64,000 bases of DNA from Saccostrea echinata (taxonomy: Eukaryota). Shown in pieces: positions 4,777 through 43,945 of the stretch. The stretch's first letter is position 1; each line of letters starts with the position of its first letter. The position numbers and the translations under genes were made by a program. The notes beneath the pieces are model-generated. The model did not search any database. It was not told where the DNA came from and saw nothing but the letters and a program-made list of their open reading frames with translations. The DNA is taken from assembly GCF_033153115.1 (NCBI RefSeq), contig NW_026889803.1, positions 59,458,001 through 59,522,000 on the forward strand, written 5' to 3'.

Positions 4777-7700
4777 ATGGAATACAATATTTCAATTTTG
4801 TTCATTATTTTAATTTCAACCATTAAAGAAGTGAGTGCCTCGTCAGATTGGAATATCGGAAACCTCCTTCAGCAATATTTTACGTTGTGTGGCCCAAATC
4901 ACTTTTGCTTTATGCATGCTTTTGTCTGGACGACGCACGCTGATAATATCAAGCACAACTGTCCGCCATGTTCCTGTGAAAAGAAATGCTGGGCAGATCG
5001 TAACTGTTGCCCGGATTTGTATTTCTCTCATCCAGAGCCTGCCTGCACATCTGCTGCCATTTTAAATGAATCATTAACCTATGAACAAAGTTCAACCTTT
5101 CTTATGATCGATTCCTGTCCAAAAAGTACAGACAAGGAGATAAAACGGAACTGTGAAGGTGATTCAAGTTATACTGAAAAAATTCTCTATCCTCCAGTGA
5201 CCAGTCAAAACTCCTCCCTGGCGTACCTAAACCGTTACTGTGCTGACTGCAATGATGATTTCAATTACGATCCTTGGCCATTAGATATCGTCTGTGACAA
5301 GTTCTTAGACATTAATTTCATTTCTTCGTATGCTGAATTGATTGAAAAGGGAAGAGAGAATCGGTGCAATATATTGTCATATCCTCCGCACGAAGAGATC
5401 AACTACAGGTGTAGACAGGATGTGCAAGTAAGGGTGAACTTTGATTCGTGTAATAAAACCGGAAGCTGGAAAACATTTGACTACAATATTCAACGAGCCT
5501 GTGAATCCAGGTATATCAATAAAGACAAAATGTTTAAAAACATGTTCTGCAAAATCTGCAATCCCCCTGTCTATACTGAGAATGTGATTGGTCGATGTAA
5601 TGTCACGGGTATGTGGGATGAATATAATCCAACACACGAGAGAGCATGTCTAAATAATGACTTTAACCCAGGTTCACTTCCGTATAGAAATGTATTTTGT
5701 TTTTCGTGTAATAAACCAGCACGATTCAATTCCAATTTCCTTGATGTCAACGCAGAAATAAAGTCAAAAATTAATGATATTCAAAATACAGGAGAAACTA
5801 AATCTTTTTATTTCGACATTAGCGTTTTAAACTTTGATGAGGACTTCTTCGAAACTAAAATCAACGGTGAGCAATCGGACTATAAGAAGAGACCAAACGA
5901 TGTGATTATCCAGTCTCCAAACATAACAAACCTTTTATTCAAAAGAATGTCTCTAGACGGAAACATGAACACCTGTGGAAATTACAGCATTCCAAGTCTG
6001 TTTTCTACTGTCGAAAGTAATTGTTCATGTGACCCTAAATGCATTTTTACCGACGGTCTTTACGGGTCTCAGAGGTGTTGTTCTGACGTCCCTCTGAGAT
6101 ATCCTTCCGTTTGTCTGAGTGAAAAGAAATTATCGATGAAAGAGGTACAAAGGAACGCAGAAGAACTCCTTGTAACAAGTGGATGCTATGGAACCAAAGA
6201 ATTTCCAGAATTTATTAAAAGAGGATGTCATGAACAATTTGAAGATGTTTTTTCTTTGCATCCAGTCACAGATTTATCAACTGATATCCCGTATCTGAAT
6301 ATGTATTGTTTACAATGTAGCAAGTCTCCATCAACCAAACTAGCAAGACACAAACCATGGGATATTACGGCAAATTGTTCCGTCTTTATAGACTATCCAA
6401 ATTTCTTACTTTTTTCGAATTTTCTTAAAGCGCTACGATCTGCAGGCTGTGAAACATATTATCACCCCCCTAATTCAGTGACTTCTTGTCAATACAGCAA
6501 AGGTAAAATGTGTTTCCGAAAGACTGACAGCATAATAGACAAATGTAATAAAACAGGACATTGGCCGTACAAAGATCCGGATATTCACAGGGCATGTGAA
6601 TTTATGCCAGCGGGTTCTTTACCTTTGTGGCGCGATAATAACAATGATCAAATGACAACATATAAAAACGTTTATTGTGCGATATGTAATCCCCCGGAAT
6701 GGTCGAATCCTTTTGTTGAAAATTGTTCCTCTGAAGTCAGTACGATCAACATCCAGAAGTGTAACTTTTTCCCCAAAATTTATTTCTTATATCCGTACAA
6801 GAATATCTTCTGTGACTTTTGTACAAATGAATTCTTGAGAACAAAAACAATCTCTAACAATGTTTGTTATAATGTTGACCACCGATACCCACTATCATTG
6901 GAGACGGGAGACAGCATCCTTTCTCAATACTTCTCACCATATAGGTCTATTGCGAAATCCTCGAATTATTTATATAAATATCCGAATGACAATTTTCGCG
7001 CTGAAGTCATTGGTGAACCTCGATGCATGGAAGCACAAAAATTTTACTCATTGATGGTATTTGTATTTCTGTATTTTGTCTCAGCAGTCAATTTTCGCTT
7101 TATTCATACAATGCAATTTGCAAAACTTTGTTCCCACATGATTAAGTAAAGTCAATACGTTTTCTATTTCAGGGAGGCTGCAGAAACATCACATGTTATC
7201 CCGGGAAAGCTTTGAATCTTGGTAAATCTTGTTTGCCGCTATTTAGAAAAGCACGAAATCTCCGATACCACATGGATGCCTATTTCAACTGCTCTACTCA
7301 GTTTAACACTTCTACTGAGGATACGCTGTATAATGTACTTCGATTTCCATTTTACAAATTGGGATTTCTGTTTGGCCAAAGGTCTTTGAGAAAATTGATA
7401 ACGGAGATTGATATACCTTGTCAGGGAAACACTCTTCTGGAAAATTATTTTCAATTGCATTTGAGTTTCATACTATTTTTTGAAAATCCAGTCCCGAGAC
7501 TTCAAAGAGAATTAGATCTCTTGAATATCAAGTACAATTTTAGTATTCCTGGAATTACCATGATTTCAAACGCCCCTCCCGCCGAATCTAACTGGTCTTG
7601 TTCCTTTATCTATGATGACAATTCTGATGATTGGACTAAATATCGTGATGTTCGAGTAAGCAATCTTTTAGTTTGCACACAAATTGAGTTAAGTCGACAA

Positions 7701-8732
7701 GAATTTGAAATTTATAAAACGGGGGAAAATACTGTTATGCTAATAAAAATGTATAACATAACTATAGATTGGGAAGATTTTGACATTTTGCCTGACGGTA
7801 CAGCACGCGTTTGTGTCTCTGCCTTACATCAGAATCAGAAACAAACGACTTACGAAATTTATTTCAAGAAAAGGCAACAGGGTTCCATAGTATTTGCCTT
7901 CTTGGTCTTGTCTTGTATTTTTCTCTTTATTACGTTTTGCACGTACTGTATATTCCACGAGCTACGGACATTGCCAGGAGGAACAATAATGATTCTCATT
8001 GCTGTTTTGTTCACGACATTTGCTTTCATTCTTAATGGCAGCGGAGGAGAGGTCAATACAAGAAGATGCGTAGTATTCGGCATAATTACCCACTACCTGT
8101 GGCTAACCTCATTCTTTTCTATGAACATATGTAGTTTTCATTTGTATCGAGTTTTCCATTCCAAATTTCCTCTGCACAACCAAAATAACAAATGGTGCAT
8201 CTTGGGTAAATATTCTGTTTATATCTTTGTTATCCCGCTGGTGATTGTTTCAACCAACATAACAGTGATGATTATGACAAAACATGATATTGGATATGGG
8301 AAAGTAAAATGCTTTATACATGAAAGCCTACACCTGATCGTATTTTTCCTCATTCCGGTTGGCCTCCTGTGTACAGTAAACTTATTTTTCTTTATTAAAA
8401 CCTTGTCAACAATAATTCGATCTCCCAAACTCCGCAAGAATAAAGCAAAGACAAATGAATTCTCCATATTTGCGCGCTTATTTACAATCACCGGTGCAAC
8501 TTGGTTATTACAGATCATGGGTGATTTTGTAGAAAATACAGAGGTCTCTTTTGTGTTTAGCGCTATTAACAGTCTACAAGGTGTATTTATATTCATTGCA
8601 TTTATGTGTAGTAGGAGAACGCTAAAACTTTATCAAAGATTAATTTTCCGACGTCGGAAGAGAGAGGGTTCTGCAACATCTGTTACCAGAAGTACCCAAA
8701 AAACATTCACTGAATCCGAAACTTCTGCATGA
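4777..8732 (+). CDS. Class B (secretin/Methuselah/adhesion-like) 7TM GPCR with a large Cys-rich ectodomain, ~1279 aa
   Basis: Exon 1 is 4777-7056 (signal peptide, SMB-like CSC...C....CC.D modules, repeated CN.TG.W...AC...N.FC..CN modules). GT-AG intron 7057-7172 (phase 0). Exon 2 is 7173-8732 with seven hydrophobic helices and the family-B motifs ELRTLPG, HYLWL.SFF.M, GYG..KCFI, TG.TW, NSLQGVFIF. Confidence 0.9.
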
Positions 8733-9500: not shown

Positions 9501-10529
9501 TCTTCATACATTTCATCTAAACATGCATGTTTATTTCTGATGTGTACCTCATTTGGAAAATACGACAATTAAAAGTTGACTAGCTAAAGTAAAAAAAAAA
9601 TAACTATGATTAATGAAAAAAATGTCTGGAACTTGCAATGGGTACCTGAACAGAAGACCCCTAACACAAAAATAGCTAGTTCAGCGACCACCATTAAGCT
9701 ACGGTCATTATTGAAAAATAATGTGTCTTTTGTGTTTTAGCCCCGTGTTAGTCTTTTGGAAAATCGGATACCTGAAGTATATAATCATTTTTTATGAGAA
9801 GACTAAGTTACACCAAAAGCATTTTGATATAACAGTATACTATGATATCAAAAGAGCATAACCCAAATTTCTCGGTTTATGGTGGTTCAAATACACAATT
9901 CTGTACGTTTTCAGTGCTCACTCAATAGTTCTCCATATATCCCATGCAGAATCTGTAAATTTCATTGATCTTGTCTGAGATAATGAAAATTTTGCCAGGT
10001 CATGGTATAATTTGCATTTGTTTAGAAGATTTACAAGATTTACTAAATATCATAAAACATTGAAATATTTTGGATATTTGAAAACGCGCTATACTCTAGG
10101 CTTTGTCACATACTAAGTGCGCTATGCCTCTTTGCTATTCACAATAAATCAGTGGATATTTACTGACTTTCTAATATAAATTTAGAAAATTGTGCTCTTT
10201 TCAAATAAGAGAATTTTTTATTTTGGAAAATCGTAAAATGTAAATAAAAAAATATATATTCATTAACAACAATTGGAAAATCTTAAAACGGCAAAGCATT
10301 TTTTCAGTGGTATTAGAATTTTTTATTATTGTCATTTTTTTTTCAATATCGTTAAGGTAATGAACCCATAATAGCATCAAATTCAATTATAGTGAATGCA
10401 TAACAGATATGTATTGGGTGAATACTCAGAATATTTAGACATAATTTTCATGTTTCAGTATCGGTATTAAGAGCGGAAGGTGTCCTAATTTATTACCTTG
10501 TCCTGTCCTTGAAGATTTATCCCAAATAT

Positions 10530-11000
10530 GCAGTACCTTCATCACCTGCATATGGGGTATATATCTCTCAGTTGATTCGATACGCAAGAGCATGCTCTAC
10601 GTACGTACAATTTCTAAAACGAGGTAAATTATTGACAAACAAGTTAATGCAACAAGAATATCAGCAGTCTCGTTTAAAGTCATCATTTCGTAAGTTCTAT
10701 GGTCGATACAATGACCTTGTCAGCAAATACAGTTTATCATTGAGTCAAATGCTGACTGACGTTTTTCATACTATTTGCTAGGCAATTATTACACACTAAA
10801 TTGCCGACGGATTTTTCCGTTATTTCCCGAACATGACAAGGAGCACACGGCGGGTGTGACCGGTGGGCAGGGGATGCTCACTTCTCCATGGCAGATGATC
10901 CCATCTCTGATATTTGGGGGTCCGTGTTTGCTCTGCTCCTATTTTGTATTGTTAAATGGACTTTTGAGCTTGAATACGTTCGTTATCTCCATATATTTCA
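10530..11000 (+). mobile_element. Penelope-like element 3' fragment (RT thumb / C-terminus and 3' region)
   Basis: ORF 10509-10781 reads PSSPAYGVYISQLIRYARACSTY...; same family as the fragments at 3.8 kb, 9.1 kb and 36-38 kb. Confidence 0.75.
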
Positions 11001-11250
11001 TCCCCTTTTGCTCTCAATCAATAAAAATCAATTTTAAAACTCTATCTGGTACAGAAAATATAAAGGAACAGAATAATTCTCCTCGATCAACCCATTCTAT
11101 CAAAAACAGATGTGATTAATGACAGTAAAAATATGGGTTTATGTTTTAATACCTGATAAATTAAAATATAAAAAGAATACTCGATACAGATGCTGATACT
11201 TTATTTTTAAACAAATCACGAATATAAAAAAGTTCGAGCCAGAAAAAGAG

Positions 11251-14200
11251 CTATGTTCGCAATATCCAATCTCGTTCCCAGTCTCGTTTTCGTTTTCGAG
11301 CCTCGTTCCGCTGCCTGCTGTCCTCAATGCTTCGTTTCTTTCTTTCCTTGGATATCACCTCAATAGTGAAAGGAGAAGCGGCAAATCTGCTCCACTTTGG
11401 ACAGGACAAACCGGACCATGTCTCCAGCTTCCGTTGTAGAGTGGTAACTATCTTGTCCGGATTCACACCGTGCATGACGTGAAAGTTTACAAAATTGACC
11501 TTCCGGTTGTGGATCATCAAAACCTTTATCATTAAAACATAGATTAAGTGCATCCCAAGAAACATTTCTTAATTTTCTATTATACCAAAATCTTTAATTA
11601 CGTAAATATATAGACATAATTACAGTTAAAGAGATATCTCATGACCAGAATGTTACCTTTAGAACACTCCGAAGAGCAGAAATATCTTTGTAACGGTCTA
11701 TTACAACAGATACATTTCCCGAGACATTCATAGCAATCTCCTGCTCCACAATCTGTAGAAGAGGGCTAGGATTGTCTGTGGCACCGAATACTTCTTCCTC
11801 GATACTCGTGTTGGGATTCGGTTTGTACGTTTTTGCTAGTAAAGTTTCTTTTAAATGAAAAAGAAATATAAATGTAAACATGAGTTAGACAAAATAAATC
11901 AACAGCAGGTAAAAATAGTTGCTAGAAGTGTGAAATGGTTCCAATGCCAACATACGGAATATCGAGTATAGCTGTACTGTTTCTTGACATTTGGTTCCAT
12001 CTTTCTTACAGGCATACGCATGCGAAGCTGACTCAACATTATCCGGGTTGAAAAAGGACATGCTCTCTGTTGGCTTCAGCAGTGGTATACTGGCATGCTC
12101 CATAAAGTTGTCCACGAGTTCTGAACACACCCGTACCTTACCATCCCACTTCTTCCCTAAAATTAAGAAGATAAAAACTTAAGTTACTCTAAGTTGCAGA
12201 CCAGTTCCCTTAAACCATAGCAATTCATTTATTTTTAAAGATATAATTTTAAAAATATTCCGATATGAGGCAACCAATGTTTTCATTTTCAAAACTGCTT
12301 CTTTTCAAACTTATATTTTTAATTGTTCCAAAAGCCCATTTCTTTAAATAAGCAAACGGATATGAAGAGACATGCTTCTTGTTTTCCAATGAAATTATTG
12401 TTCAGATTACTTGCAGTTTTTCTTTCATTCTTCAGTATTTTTATTACTTAAGTTTCCTATCTGAATATCAGTAATTTACACCTTAAGAAATTATTCATTC
12501 CTTGTCAGGAGTAGCAATAATAACTGACAGATACTCGTTTAATGTTTGTTTACCAGATCCTGAACATCCCCCACAGCCAGTGACTATACACTGTTTAATC
12601 TGTTCACGAGTTGTTGTTATGTCCAGTCGATCAGTTCCTGCCACACTCTGCAATTGTTTCAAAAGTTCATCCCCGAGTTCTTCCCTGGCTTTGGTAGAGT
12701 TCTGGCAGAATTTCTTATCGTGGAATTGTAAGCAGAAACTGCAATAAATGAAATAAAGAACATCAGTCAATCACTATAAATATCTCAAAATTTCCATTTA
12801 CTTATATATTTGTACCAGTCATTCGTTAATTTATTTTCAACTAATAGCTATTTACTTAAGTAGTACTTTTATTTTAAACAAATATTACCCTGGTCTGTTC
12901 AGGTTAAAGTTTAGATAAGTTTTCTTCTCGAGGTCAGGCTTCTTACATGCACTTTTGGTATCATATGGTATGATACCTGGACCACCCTTTGTTATTTCTG
13001 ACCAGTATAACTTAAGCTCGTTCCACATACACTCAGTTTCTTTGTTAATTTTAGAATTTATCTTCAAATCAATAATTCTGTTGTCGTCACGGAGAGGATA
13101 AAGATCAACATGGATGCTATTTTTTCCTATTTCTTCAAGTTGTTTCACGTGGACACCTAATCCTCTTCTCTGCAAACGGAGGAATGGGGTACATGTAACC
13201 ATCAACATCTTAGCCAGGTTAAGTACTTCATCATCACTTCTGGGCATTATTTCAGCTGCTTGGCCCATCTGGAACCTTGCTAGTTGTCGCCTATTCCAGG
13301 CTACCTCTTGTTCGTTAGCAGATTTTGGTCTGTACCCTGTTAGTATTTGTATTTTACCTCTGAAGTCCTGCTGTGTTAGTTCTAAACATTCGACGAGAGA
13401 GGGATCAATGCGCAAGAAACGATGACCTTCGAATTTGAAGTCACCTATTTTGAAATGTTTGGACAATTTTATTTCTTCCCTTGCTCCATCTACTAGAAGA
13501 GGTTTCTTGTTCTCGTGGTCAAACTCCGCACTGTAGGAATATTCACCTTCCTCTGATGAAGGAGGGGCGACAGCAATAAGTACCTCACCACTGTGATAAG
13601 GAATCAGAGTGGTTCTAAATCCATCCTGCAGTTTTACAAATACCTCAATTGCAACATTATCGACATTGCGAACAAAATCAAAGCCAGCACATATTGCAGC
13701 ATGCCCAAGAATAGGAATAGTGACGTTGGGGTTCTCTTTCACTGTAAGTCGTGCTCCCCTGAAAAGTAGATGTAAATGATTTTAGTTAATTTGGGCTAAA
13801 ATGTGTCTCCTCTTTCTTGAATGCTAACAATTCAAATGACTTGCCTTCCTTCAAGAAACAGTTTGGACTCCTGTCGGTCCACTTTGTCAGCAAAAGCCCT
13901 CTCCACGGTGATGTTCAATCCTAGATAAACATTACTAAGGCAATAAAATTGCTTGCACTATTTTTTTGTTATTACACTACAAGAAATGTCAAAACACAAT
14001 CATAAGCTCACCCTGCAACTCATCTTTTGCAATCAATGCTAATCTTCTCATGCGAAATGCAAGTCTAGGGGCCATGACACGATTGGCACTCCAGCTCCAA
14101 GGGTCCTCTGCATTAGAAAAGCTTCCATCCTGGCATTTTCTCATTGTTCCGCATTGTTCATCAGTTTGATTTTCTCGTCTTTCATGAAGAAACTCGAAAT

Positions 14201-17200
14201 CGTCAAACTGGTACTCATACAACCTAAAGCAAAGGCAGAAAGTTATATATAGTACTGATGATATTAAGTCGCCCTTTACATGTCTATATATTAGGAACCT
14301 ACTTGTTCATTTCCTCAGAGTTTTCTCGATGAATTTGCCCTAGAGGAGGACCCACAGCGGCCTCCACCTCACCATGATACTTAGAAGGAAAAGATGCCCC
14401 ACTCTCAAGCTTCAACAAGCCAAAATCAGGACACTTCTTTCCAGGCAATATAGACCCTAAAATCAGTAATGCAAAACTGAAAAAAATAATTATATGCCTA
14501 ATACCAATAATCATATCTAGAATACATTGCATACCAAGGCGTCTCATTGCGTTGACCATGGCTGCTTTATCCGCTGCATCTTTGCCAGTGAGAGAAACTT
14601 TCTTTGTCCTTTTAACTTCACTTGTAGGAGCTTGTTTTTCACCTACTGCAACCTCTATGCCTGCTTCTATGTTCACTTTAGACACATACTGGAAACCTGA
14701 GCAAATTGCCATTTGTTCAAGGCGCTTGTTATCTTTATCATCTTTAATAACAGGCGGGGAAACTGAAAAGTTGTTGCTGGCGTAAGTTAAAGCCAGCTGG
14801 GCTGCTCTTCCTTCATAATATAAGCTCTCATCACCATGTCTTCCGTGCGGATTTGAGGAAGTTGGTTCATCCCATGCTTCAACAACTACCAGTTTTTCTA
14901 CACAAAACAAAAAATAACTGAAATAAACGTTTGATTATAGAAAAGGGGTAGTAAATATTTATATATTGTTATAGCAATGACCTGAGCTGGATTCGTTTTC
15001 ATCATGCTGCATGATATGCATTTATCAAGTCATGAATTTCAAAGGTGCACATATGATTTTGAACCAACGCACAATCCAGTCATTTAGTTGAATCACCTCT
15101 GAAAATCTTCAACAATAATAAAGACTATTTTCCCAAGAATTAGAATAAACTCTGAAAGTAAAATTTAAAATATTCCACTCCAGAAAATTTACAAAAGGAA
15201 TAAATATAACACCGAACGCCATTTTGAAAAAGCACATTAAACAGAAAGCTATATATAAACAACTGAAGGGCAAATTGTAAAGGGATAAAAGGCTTGGTAA
15301 ACTAAAACGGATTAGATAATTATAGACTAATCATATATAATAATTTACTTAGCATAATTATTAATTTAGTATCAAAGTCGATTTAAAAATACATGTAGAT
15401 GCATTTTAATAAACTTACTATCTGGCCATTCAGCAGAAACATATTTCCCAAGACGGCTGATTTTTGTTGCTAGTTTTGGAACCATCAGTCGGTCAGCACA
15501 CGCCTGGTTAATGTCATCGGCTCCACGATAAACACATCTTCCGCAGGGACGACCAGGGGCCCCGCACCAAGAAGAAACGTTCGCCTCCTCTGACGAAAAC
15601 AGGACATTGTCTCCCCACATCTGAGTCAAACTAGAAAACGGAATGAAATCATAGAGGAAATGGAATTATTTTGTATTTTAACAAGCTAAGGAGGTAATGC
15701 GCTTACATTCTGAAGTCGGGATCTTTTCTACTGATCGACATTCTTGGATTTCCCACAACATCTGACATCGCGAGTCCGTCATATAGTGATGTCTTGGTTG
15801 AAATTGGACAATCCGCTGAACACTTCTGATACAAAGTGTCATTCTCAAAACTCACTTTTTTGTTGAAGCCCTTTGCAATTAAGCTATTCCTGAAAGATAT
15901 GCAAAAAGTATTTTACTTCTGTATATTAAGTCTAGGTATGTACAAAAATATATATTTATATTCGTGTAAAACATAATATCAAACTCATTCGTATAGTACA
16001 CATTATATTTCAAAATCATACCTTTGCAATAGTATAATTTAATGGTAATGAAAGTATAAGTGTTTACTCTTTAAGGTCATACCATATTGACACTCCGAAG
16101 GCTTCGACCGTGAGTCTCGCCTCTGTAACATTGAATTCTCCACTTAGGTCAGCCGATTTTGTGGTGCAACGCTGCGCGTCGTTAACAGCAGATTTACCAC
16201 GAATAGTCGGTTTCAACCTTTAAAACACAAATTCAAGATGCTTTTATTGTTCAAAGATAAAAGACAAGAAATTTTAAAAGTTAAAAACATAATTTTGTAA
16301 GTGTCAAAGCATATTAATGAAGGGTAAATTTGCATTTACTTATAGTTTATTGGCGGTGAAAAATCTATTTCCATGTCGCGTGCAAACCACCCAATGGTTG
16401 TGTTGAATAGTATCTAAAATAAAATAAAAACTCTTGTAAACCTGAATACTCAGATGCTTGACCATGAAAAAAACTACTGAATCAACAGAAAAATGTTAAC
16501 CTGCTGATACACTGATACGTTGACGGACATGTCTTTGTCGCCATTTACAGTATTGCGATGAGTAGTGGACGTCCAATTATGTGGGACTACGTCTCCCCCT
16601 AGCGCCGAAGTTCCACTGTATTCATGAACTACAAGAACAACGACATATTTCATTTTACTTTAATCAAAGAATACCTATGTTCTAGATATTCTAAGATTAT
16701 GCACTTCGATGCTTTTTAATTATTGAAGGTGTGTAGATCTAGAAATAATGGGCTTGCCAAAAGAGTATTTTCCTCCAACTTCAATATCCGTTTCCATAGA
16801 AACGGCTGATCTTGTGTCAACGTGCAAGTCAACATGTGTAGATCCCGTGTATTTTACTGTCAGCATCACTGGCGGGAGGTTTCGCACATGAGCGAGAGGC
16901 ACAGAGAACAACATTGTCGGAGGAACACGTAATTCTTCCATCTCTTTGTGCAACTCTAGTTTGATGTCTTTTGAAGTCTGGAAACTTGATTTCAAATTTA
17001 TTGTAGTATTTGATTCCAGCTATTAGAAATCAATTATGAAACTATTATAATTAACTCTGTTAACAATTCAGTGCAAATATATTTGGTGAAAATTCGAGAT
17101 AAAATCATGACTAACTTTGTTAAGGTAGCGATGGATCTCTGGTTCATTCATGGCGTTCTTCTTTATGATCAAGTCACTGAAAAATAATACAATTTGTTAT

Positions 17201-18416
17201 AAATTTATATTTACAATTGCCTTTGCGCTTTACACGTTCATTTTGTCAACTTACAATTCATAAGACATGTGGGATGTTCCACTGCAGTCCTCACAGACGA
17301 AACTCATGACGTCATTGTTTGTTACGTTCTCAGTGTAGCGGTAGTCTGTGTCGTTTTCTCCGATTGCTAACCCAAAGGATCCAATCTCACCAGAGTCATC
17401 TTTATTCCATGGAATAGAGGTTGTGTCACTGTACTGCCATGTGATGTTTCCTAGGAGTTCGGACAAAACATTGGCAATGTACCGGCGATGTCTTCTCCGT
17501 GTTTCTGGTGGATGAGATGCACTGTTTCCAGGGGTATAGCGGAATTTAATGTCCGCTTCGTCTATTACATCAAAGGCTCTGAAAATGTTGAATAATTCAA
17601 TTTCTCAGTCTAAAAATTAAATCCCGAAAAAAATTATTTCCATTTTTATTTTCTATTCTGCAGAATGACATGTATTACAATAGTCTTGGTGAAGTATCAC
17701 TTACCTAACAGATTGAGTGTGAAGGACTACTCCGGTCTCTGTTGGGAAGAAGATCTCCTTAATTTTGGCGTAGACACCTCTTTGTTTTGACGGACTCCCG
17801 GGTAACGTATTCAGAGTGCAGTCCCATTTCGGACTCCCCATCACCACTTGACCTTTCTTCCAGTTTCTCCCGATCCCTTTGTGTTCCACAGCGATTAAAA
17901 TCTTTTGATCCTGACATATCACTCTCTGAAGTCGAAAGTAAGTCAAGGTTTATTCTTAATGCAATTAATTTAAAGATTCCTTTTGAAGAAAATTCTTTCA
18001 CTCTTTTTATTTCAAAAATTAAAATTTCAGATTTTAAAGTTAGTGAAAATATCTGAGGGTTTTACCTTTTAACCTCAATACACCTGTTTCAGTTCCAAGA
18101 AATCTCACTCGGTACATGTATCAATATAGATAATCGAGAATCCATGACTCACACAAAGTGATTTTACTTTATTTCAAATTATGACAAATTCAGCGTATTT
18201 GGAAAATATTTCTCTTTTTACATCGTGAATTTTTTAAGTTACCTTGATTCCAGACACCCTGTCCAAGTCGATGGTTTCACTCAGACGACCTTTACTTCTA
18301 AGCTTCACGTGTTCCCCACTTTCTGGATGCTTGACATCAACATCGTGGTCAAAATGGTGGCTCTGAAGCCCCAGTATCAGAGGCAACAGAGCAAGTCCCA
18401 GTACCGCGCCTCTCAT
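11251..18416 (-). CDS. Secreted ~1432-aa protein: signal peptide, putative prodomain, beta-rich region, two Hedgehog-N-like domains, peptidase M15A-like domain, Cys-containing C-terminal domain; no Hint domain
   Basis: 19 exons: 18416-18243, 17925-17705, 17578-17255, 17176-17116, 17019-16758, 16628-16501, 16413-16340, 16217-16083, 15889-15707, 15630-15419, 14897-14535, 14456-14303, 14223-14012, 13920-13845, 13758-12889, 12738-12554, 12156-11956, 11847-11657, 11523-11251. Total 4299 nt, phases compatible, two GC donors. Hedge motifs: ADRLM...WPD.KLVVVEAWDE...SLYYEGRAAQL...AICSGFQYV and ANRVM...LFLEGRGARL...AAICAGFDFV...IEVFVK. M15A-like motif: LSKHFKIGDF...IDPSLVECLE...ILTGYRP...GQAAEI...IHVDL. 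Confidence 0.85.
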
Positions 18417-43798: not shown

Positions 43799-43945
43799 NN
43801 NNNNNNNNNNNNNNNNNNNNNNNNNNNNNNNNNNNNNNNNNNNNNNNNNNNNNNNNNNNNNNNNNNNNNNNNNNNNNNNNNNNNNNNNNNNNNNNNNNNN
43901 NNNNNNNNNNNNNNNNNNNNNNNNNNNNNNNNNNNNNNNNNNNNN
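43799..43945. other. Assembly gap (147 N)
   Basis: Run of N. Confidence 1.

Follow-up and report, generated by a model that had tools for sequence, protein, structure and literature searches.

A sponge expressed sequence tag with a hedge domain but without Hog has been described by Bürglin (PMC2362128), and Hedgehog (Hh)-related sequences of lophotrochozoans, amphioxus and echinoderms have been named "Hedglets" by Jägers and Roelink (2021, BMC Mol Cell Biol 22:22; PMC8052667). The latter lack catalytic residues, their distribution was termed enigmatic, and they are defined in that paper by a motif of ca. 105 amino acids (aa) alone, being listed in the supplement with no architecture or function given; a literature search found the term in no other paper. 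The same study proposes that a bacterial M15A peptidase ("BacHh") was transferred into an early animal. The window analysed here, a stretch of 64,000 nucleotides (nt) of the Saccostrea echinata genome (contig NW_026889803.1, positions 59,458,001 to 59,522,000), carries on its minus strand a bona fide animal gene, LOC133206181, which is annotated but uncharacterised. Its product has two hedge domains followed by an M15A-like module and by a C-terminal domain that probably has the fold of CD38 (Table 1). The gene represents a variant of the barely described Hedglet kind, with N- and C-terminal domains that extend the earlier layout, and the statement of an original prediction, made from the letters of the window, that no characterised family with this layout is known needs to be qualified, since Hedglets have been named and the gene is annotated in RefSeq. 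No paper found in the literature search describes the variant with two hedges, the M15-like parts or the CD38-like parts.

When the minus strand was read from stop to stop between 11000 and 18700, a chain of open segments appeared, and the Ostrea edulis orthologue (P0073; XP_048781054.2, 1434 aa) aligned with the window by tblastn in a colinear manner over aa 1-1434. A splice-site search anchored on this alignment, in which sites were placed with short junction peptides and exons were then compared singly with the database protein, gave 17 GT-AG and 2 GC-AG introns. The coding sequence (CDS) is 4299 nt long with a stop codon at 11251-11253, and its in-frame translation is letter-identical, as checked for each of the 19 exons, to the RefSeq entry "uncharacterized protein LOC133206181 [Saccostrea echinata]" (P0085, 1432 aa). 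The 19-exon, in-frame secreted protein of ca. 1432 aa first proposed was thus recovered, and all peptide strings quoted at that time are present in the minus-strand protein. The GC-AG introns are introns 5 and 14 (2 of the 18 introns), with donors at 16756-16757 (GCAAGC) and 13843-13844 (GCAAGT) in the order listed, and both junctions agree with the RefSeq protein. A fusion of two or more adjoining genes by the gene model is extremely improbable, as an identical end-to-end layout has been predicted independently in bivalves, gastropods and cephalopods, the reading frame runs unbroken through the 19 exons with canonical splice sites, and signal-peptide-like N-termini align in nine full-length homologues, with the start Met as their sole invariant residue. 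Whole-protein analyses were conducted on database proteins, namely those of the window gene and of its O. edulis orthologue, and a paralogue from the same genome (P0005).

The window protein consists, in order, of a signal peptide, an N-terminal domain, hedge 1, hedge 2, the M15A-like module, the C-terminal domain, a dibasic site and a short tail; in the mollusc proteins of ca. 1400 aa this layout was read with a home-made hidden Markov model (HMM) for each segment. The N-terminus is signal-peptide-like when read by eye, and no 19-aa window of the protein attains a Kyte-Doolittle value of 1.6, so that there is no sign of a transmembrane segment, which fits a soluble secreted protein. Two furin-like sites occur, RRRHRR and RKKR, the second of which retains its R1406 in 22 of 24 sequences from the two clades (see below) and is followed by a short conserved tail. 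Pfam detected no Hint domain at E<=10 and no VWA, cadherin or EGF domain in the RefSeq protein, in agreement with the initial claim that neither Hint nor a Hedgling-type VWA/cadherin part is present, and no GCF motif was found in the window protein. The only Hint match in the 923-Mb genome belongs to the canonical hh gene on contig C1. With Hedgling, the hedge-VWA-cadherin protein of sponges and cnidarians, the window protein shares a Hint-less hedge domain within a large extracellular protein, but it differs from it in having no VWA, cadherin, EGF or transmembrane parts, and its sponge relative from Oscarella (P0043) is not Hedgling-like either. Of the layout originally proposed, the hedge pair and the M15A-like module stand; it is incomplete, about half of the protein having been overlooked, namely the N-terminal domain of ca. 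410 aa and the C-terminal domain of probable CD38/ADP-ribosyl-cyclase fold, the latter kept from sponge to amphioxus.

The two Hedgehog-N-like domains are well supported. HH_signal was the only Pfam match of note in the RefSeq protein (83.7 bits, E 1.6e-23, cut-off 22.1) and fell into two stretches, while Pfam searches with single exons returned only a weak HH_signal match of exon 11 (20.1 bits, E 5.8e-4). A profile of nine full-length family members matched Hedgehog N-domains only in the PDB (E 5e-17), a 37-sequence family profile likewise retrieved Hedgehog (E 9e-22), and hedge 1 and hedge 2 align to each other by hhalign with a probability of 99.1 (E 4e-19). Both domains have an intron at a common position right before the "VVEAWDE" / "ITVERAFAD" strand, which suggests that they arose by internal duplication. 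When compared by alignment to the exons of the canonical Hh of the same oyster, the zinc ligands H141/D148/H183 read Y/Q/E in hedge 1 and F/R/E in hedge 2, and the position of the catalytic E177 is occupied by Val in both. No family member tabulated keeps the full zinc triad in its hedge domains. Loss of this zinc site is also known from some true Hh proteins, e.g. that of Drosophila. Hedge 1 retains the EE pair, the Asp of ADRLM and the equivalents of E127, D130 and H135, so that part of the calcium site survives and the domain may bind calcium; between its EE and DRLM motifs it bears an insert of ca. 24 residues with four Cys. All of these retained residues are lost in hedge 2, and the equivalents of E127 and D130 are also lost in hedge 1 of cephalopod members. 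The single canonical hh gene of S. echinata (C1:10952225-10962814) has two HH_signal exons and then Hint; its second exon scores 22.9 bits with the Peptidase_M15_3 profile, illustrating the kinship of Hh and M15A.

Both hedge domains of the window protein are homologous to Hh-N (E to SHH from 5e-17 to 9e-22 with the PDB profiles), yet the protein departs from Hedgehog ligands in several respects: Hint/Hog, a GCF autoprocessing site and an N-terminal Cys for palmitoylation are missing, its hedge domains are internal (starting at aa 515 and 771) and duplicated, other residues stand in place of their zinc triad and catalytic Glu, a Cys-rich insert is present, and the intron positions are unlike those of hh. 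The calcium-site surface of Hh is used by Hh co-receptors. The original prediction had raised the idea of a ligand or decoy for Patched/Hhip/Ihog-type partners; as a non-canonical ligand or decoy of the Hedgehog pathway, the protein would modulate Hh signalling through binding of its hedge domains to Patched, Hhip, Ihog/CDO-type proteins or glypicans. That the domains are genuine Hh-N homologues, and that hedge 1 retains the EE pair, the Asp of ADRLM and the counterparts of the calcium-site residues E127 and D130, would suit such a role. However, the protein has neither an N-terminal Cys following the signal peptide nor Hint or a GCF site and so would carry no palmitate or cholesterol, the zinc site that Hhip uses has been lost, hedge 2 is devoid of both metal sites, and cephalopod hedge 1 lacks the equivalents of E127 and D130. 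A further point against this idea is that Shh binds Ptch1 through its N-terminal 22 residues (PMC8052667). Because of the internal hedges and of the missing palmitoylation Cys, Hint/GCF and zinc ligands, this idea is weakened and such an activity is considered unlikely.

The third module gave no match to Pfam M15 families, whether searched as exon 15 or within the RefSeq protein; Peptidase_M15_3 produced subthreshold matches in four family members (best E 0.015), and neither M15 nor Rib_hydrolayse was found above threshold in the full protein or in 37 family members. PDB searches with the family profiles retrieved Hedgehog only, with neither M15 nor CD38. When exon 15 (12891-13757, minus strand, 289 aa) was compared by phmmer with 1.8 billion proteins, 72 relatives were obtained, including several mollusc proteins of ca. 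1400 aa. They are "uncharacterized" or "hypothetical" RefSeq/GenBank proteins of Ostrea, Haliotis, Sinanodonta, Batillaria, Argonauta, Octopus and Saccostrea, together with bacterial proteins annotated by Pfam as Peptidase_M15_3 / DUF882. Alignments with the bacterial proteins extend from an upstream FPSG...PLL...LS.HF segment via "ITSGYRS" to "SRHCSGQAADI", paired with "ARFQMGQAAEI". The AlphaFold model of exon 15, built on a 24-sequence alignment, has a predicted local distance difference test score (pLDDT) of 87.6; Foldseek placed LAS enzymes on top with weak E-values (0.02 or worse), and exhaustive alignment to 48,161 PDB representatives put the M15A archetype 1LBU first (Z 9.8, root-mean-square deviation (rmsd) 2.3, 116 residues), ahead of ShhN (Z 7.0), Drosophila Hh (6.4) and phage L-Ala-D-Glu peptidases (5.4-5.8). 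The M15-like and hedge modules show no sequence link by hhalign, and their kinship is visible in the fold alone. The claim of a third LAS-fold module nearest to M15A is thus upheld by the 1LBU match and the bacterial phmmer alignments; of the checks suggested at the outset, the HH_signal profile and the M15A structural comparison were positive and the Pfam M15 profile was negative.

The module therefore has the fold of the M15A zinc D-Ala-D-Ala carboxypeptidase of Streptomyces albus G (1LBU; MEROPS) and aligns directly, upstream segment included, with Peptidase_M15_3 / DUF882 (YcbK-type) proteins, but it stays below the Pfam threshold and has F-E-H where bacterial M15_3 domains have the ligands H-D-H (F-E-Y in O. 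edulis). Among the animal M15-like modules tabulated none has the full triad, with two or more of its ligands gone in nearly all of them. The replacement of H-D-H by F-E-H makes catalysis by this module unlikely.

The C-terminal domain is Cys-rich and about 300-335 aa long. Its fold was approached through the paralogue encoded on contig C14 (901 aa), which contains hedge 1, hedge 2, the M15-like module and the C-terminal domain and whose model has a pLDDT of 88.9 and a predicted template-modelling score (pTM) of 0.80. Foldseek matched this model to Hh-N (E 7e-9) and then to human and mouse CD38 (E 7e-5 to 4e-4), with a probability of 1.00. On re-alignment, its hedge 2 superimposes on ShhN with Z 18.7 (rmsd 2.1, 147/151 residues) and its C-terminal domain (model residues 623/637-883) on CD38 with Z 11.3-11.8 over ca. 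200-213 of ca. 240 residues. An unbiased structure search returned porcine CD38 (Z 11.1), the ADP-ribosyl cyclase of Aplysia (11.0) and BST-1 (10.5), and the next-best fold in this C-terminal region (Z 7.8) is likewise a NADase. The domain of the window protein matches the same family HMM as the paralogue (E 1e-146). Over 24 sequences of both clades it has ten invariant Cys and no invariant Glu or Trp; Pfam Rib_hydrolayse had no match in the RefSeq protein or in the 37 family members, and an ESM Atlas search with the domain gave no usable match. A bacterial link of the C-terminal HMM through a bacterial protein (P0044) was discarded, given its low identity, its overlap with a M15_4/VanY region and an E-value drawn from a 9-sequence database.

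The paralogue domain thus matches CD38, BST-1 and the Aplysia cyclase near full length (Z 10.5-11.8), and the family domain is, like these, extracellular, with ten conserved Cys; it differs from them by an identity of 11-13%, by the lack of a profile match and of an invariant Glu or Trp that might act as catalytic Glu or substrate-stacking Trp, and by its fusion to LAS modules in place of a solitary, membrane-anchored arrangement. Enzymes of the CD38 family have an invariant catalytic Glu. Modelling therefore points to a domain of CD38 fold that is probably non-catalytic, because this fold occurs without an invariant Glu or Trp. Were the domain instead active, the protein could be an extracellular NAD-consuming enzyme or sensor that makes or hydrolyses cyclic ADP-ribose (cADPR), NAADP or NAD, with the dead LAS modules targeting it to the bacterial cell wall as an immune effector. 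The CD38-family fold over the full domain with its ten-Cys pattern, the descent of LAS modules from peptidoglycan peptidases, the five paralogues of the oyster and the occurrence of ADP-ribosyl cyclase domains as bacterial toxin domains (PMC3417536) are compatible with this scenario, but the absence of an invariant Glu or Trp over the 24 sequences, as opposed to the invariant Glu of the enzymes, and of a Rib_hydrolayse match makes it improbable.

For the N-terminal domain, the ESM Atlas search yielded only weak leads to bacterial "hypothetical proteins" (score 0.90), a word-indexed homologue search returned its own protein only, and hhalign against the LAS modules was negative.

Taken together, the two hedge domains, the M15A-like module and the CD38-like domain all appear catalytically dead, and the protein is probably a secreted, non-catalytic assembly of enzyme-derived domains that acts as an extracellular binding or scaffolding protein. 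In such a scheme the enzyme-derived domains would have lost catalysis and their former active-site clefts would now act as pockets for a ligand, perhaps a peptide or glycopeptide such as peptidoglycan stem peptides or matrix proteoglycans. Furin-type convertases would probably trim the protein at its conserved dibasic sites, and it would not act as a lipid-modified Hedgehog morphogen. The idea of a peptidoglycan binder, put forward earlier, is compatible with the sequence data. Several points weigh against this binding or scaffolding role: the CD38 fold is taken from a paralogue that is ca. 35-40% identical to the window protein and comes without support from sequence profiles; the loss of CD38-type catalysis is read from the lacking invariant acidic and Trp residues, not from structural superposition; in the M15 triad of the window protein the third His is kept and Asp is replaced by Glu, so that weak metal binding is possible; the N-terminal 410 aa are left unexplained by the scheme; and the ligands named could be involved but stand as candidates. 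A structural component of the extracellular matrix, of adhesion or of the shell matrix, in which the domains are merely stable building blocks, was also considered: the protein is secreted, Cys-rich and predicted to be compact (as judged from the pTM of the paralogue model), and the family is expanded in molluscs. Such a component is nevertheless very unlikely, as the literature search found no hedgehog-domain proteins among shell-matrix proteomes, the protein has none of the repeats or low-complexity regions typical of matrix proteins, and the family is present in sponge and amphioxus too.

An exon similar to exon 15 occurs at five loci in the S. echinata genome, on contigs C54 (the window gene), C14, C30 and twice on C2. 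Outside the two-hedge proteins, proteins of ca. 900-970 aa from Branchiostoma, the crinoid Anneissia, Crassostrea gigas and Argopecten display the order M15-like, hedge, M15-like, C-terminal domain; a 661-aa Saccoglossus model has M15-like, hedge and M15-like modules, and the Oscarella protein contains Trypsin, PLAT, M15-like, hedge, M15-like and C-terminal domains. A maximum-likelihood tree calculated on the common M15-like and C-terminal region separates the two-hedge mollusc proteins from the single-hedge M15-like/hedge/M15-like proteins, both clades being supported at 100/100. Among the sequences examined the two-hedge clade contains molluscs only, and its sister clade comprises sponge, amphioxus, crinoid and oyster/mollusc Hedglets. 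The window protein joins Ostrea and then Mytilus, and it shares 76-92% identity with its O. edulis orthologue in every domain.

The ca. 900-970-aa proteins were equated with Hedglets by taxon and hedge position, their accessions differing from those in PMC8052667. As a Hint-less lophotrochozoan protein with the Hh-related calcium/zinc motif region and lost catalytic residues, the window protein resembles Hedglets, and it has hedge domain, linker, M15-like module and C-terminal domain in common with the equated proteins. It is distinguished from them by its position in the sister clade (100/100) and by the 410-aa N-terminal domain and the two hedges that replace the first M15-like module. The single-hedge oyster Hedglet of C. 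gigas (P0047; XP_011438131.2, 925 aa) was seen whole on many Logan contigs of ca. 3 kb; its 2775-nt open reading frame (ORF) on such a contig resembles a transcript assembly free of introns, suggesting that this sister gene is expressed. No such contig of ca. 3 kb was seen in Logan for the window gene. A Mytilus edulis protein (P0087, 846 aa) combines a hedge domain with SRCR and a likely transmembrane segment, and represents either another hedge architecture or a mis-joined model.

The window family bears on the origin of the Hedgehog ligand domain. In Hedglet-type proteins the hedge domain adjoins modules that still align directly to bacterial Peptidase_M15_3, and the same proteins also bear a predicted CD38-fold domain, a fold traced to bacterial toxin systems; animal ADP-ribosyl cyclase and Hint have both been derived from bacterial polymorphic-toxin systems by Aravind et al. 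(PMC3417536). This layout is common to sponge, amphioxus, crinoid and molluscs. Since bacterial-type M15A modules, hedge domain(s) and a cyclase-fold domain are kept together on a single chain across sponges, molluscs and amphioxus, the family may be a living relic of a bacterial cell-wall-peptidase/NADase cassette, polymorphic-toxin-like, that was taken up by an early metazoan. The Hedgehog ligand domain would then have arisen within a multi-LAS protein, with Hint joining later, and the two-hedge branch of molluscs would reflect a further internal duplication; this scenario is tentative and rather doubtful. In any case, these sequences form a concrete, testable set for dating and rooting hedge versus M15A, and define a family of apparent four-fold pseudoenzymes that are secreted and number five paralogues in one oyster.

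Table 1. Features of LOC133206181 and of its predicted product (positions in the window)
Feature	Position	Strand	Remarks
Coding region LOC133206181	11251..18416	-	19 exons, 1432 aa + stop
N-terminal domain	15859..18248	-	aa 57-470, ca. 410 aa; span includes introns
Hedge domain 1	14626..15726	-	aa 515-682; zinc positions Y/Q/E; Cys-rich insert 15584-15495
Hedge domain 2	13623..14204	-	aa 771-905; zinc positions F/R/E; calcium-site residues lost
M15A-like LAS module	13068..13622	-	aa 906-1090; zinc triad H-D-H reads F-E-H
C-terminal domain	11350..13046	-	aa 1098-1400; probably of CD38/ADP-ribosyl-cyclase-like fold, by the model of paralogue P0005; Cys invariant at ten positions
Exon 1	18243..18416	-	aa 1-58; signal-peptide-like start 18416-18363 (aa 1-18, MRGAVLGLALLPLILGLQ)
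Exon 2	17705..17925	-	
Exon 3	17255..17578	-	furin-like RRRHRR site, aa 161-166, 17493-17476
Exon 4	17116..17176	-	
Exon 5	16758..17019	-	GC donor
Exon 6	16501..16628	-	
Exon 7	16340..16413	-	
Exon 8	16083..16217	-	
Exon 9	15707..15889	-	N-terminal domain ends, hedge 1 begins
Exon 10	15419..15630	-	hedge 1: EE, Cys-rich insert, ADRLM helix
Exon 11	14535..14897	-	hedge 1 core: VVEAWDE...SLYYEGRA...GFQYV
Exon 12	14303..14456	-	linker between hedge 1 and hedge 2
Exon 13	14012..14223	-	first part of hedge 2
Exon 14	13845..13920	-	middle of hedge 2; GC donor
Exon 15	12889..13758	-	end of hedge 2, entire M15A-like module, start of C-terminal domain
Exon 16	12554..12738	-	
Exon 17	11956..12156	-	
Exon 18	11657..11847	-	
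Exon 19	11251..11523	-	stop codon; conserved RKKR site 11343-11332; 26-aa tail 11331-11254

Elsewhere in the assembly, two small contigs carry intact bacterial-type Peptidase_M15_3 ORFs (C277:16041-16346 and C174:36742-37041, with 90.7 and 46.8 bits, respectively) that are probably due to bacterial contamination or associated microbes and are not oyster genes. Within the window, a run of 147 N is located outside the gene at 43799-43945. Just past the 3' end of the gene, short plus-strand ORFs (10509-11119) contain the motif …AYGVYISQLIRYARAC… and have no Pfam match; by alignment, this motif also occurs inside a Pinctada gene model (P0022), and the ORFs are probably a repeat or retroelement fragment. 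Further on, two long adjoining plus-strand ORFs of 790 aa and 506 aa (4777-8732) are convergent with the gene, and the second contains a secretin/adhesion-type 7tm_2 domain (44 bits), so that this region looks like a nearly intron-free gene for an adhesion-type G-protein-coupled receptor.

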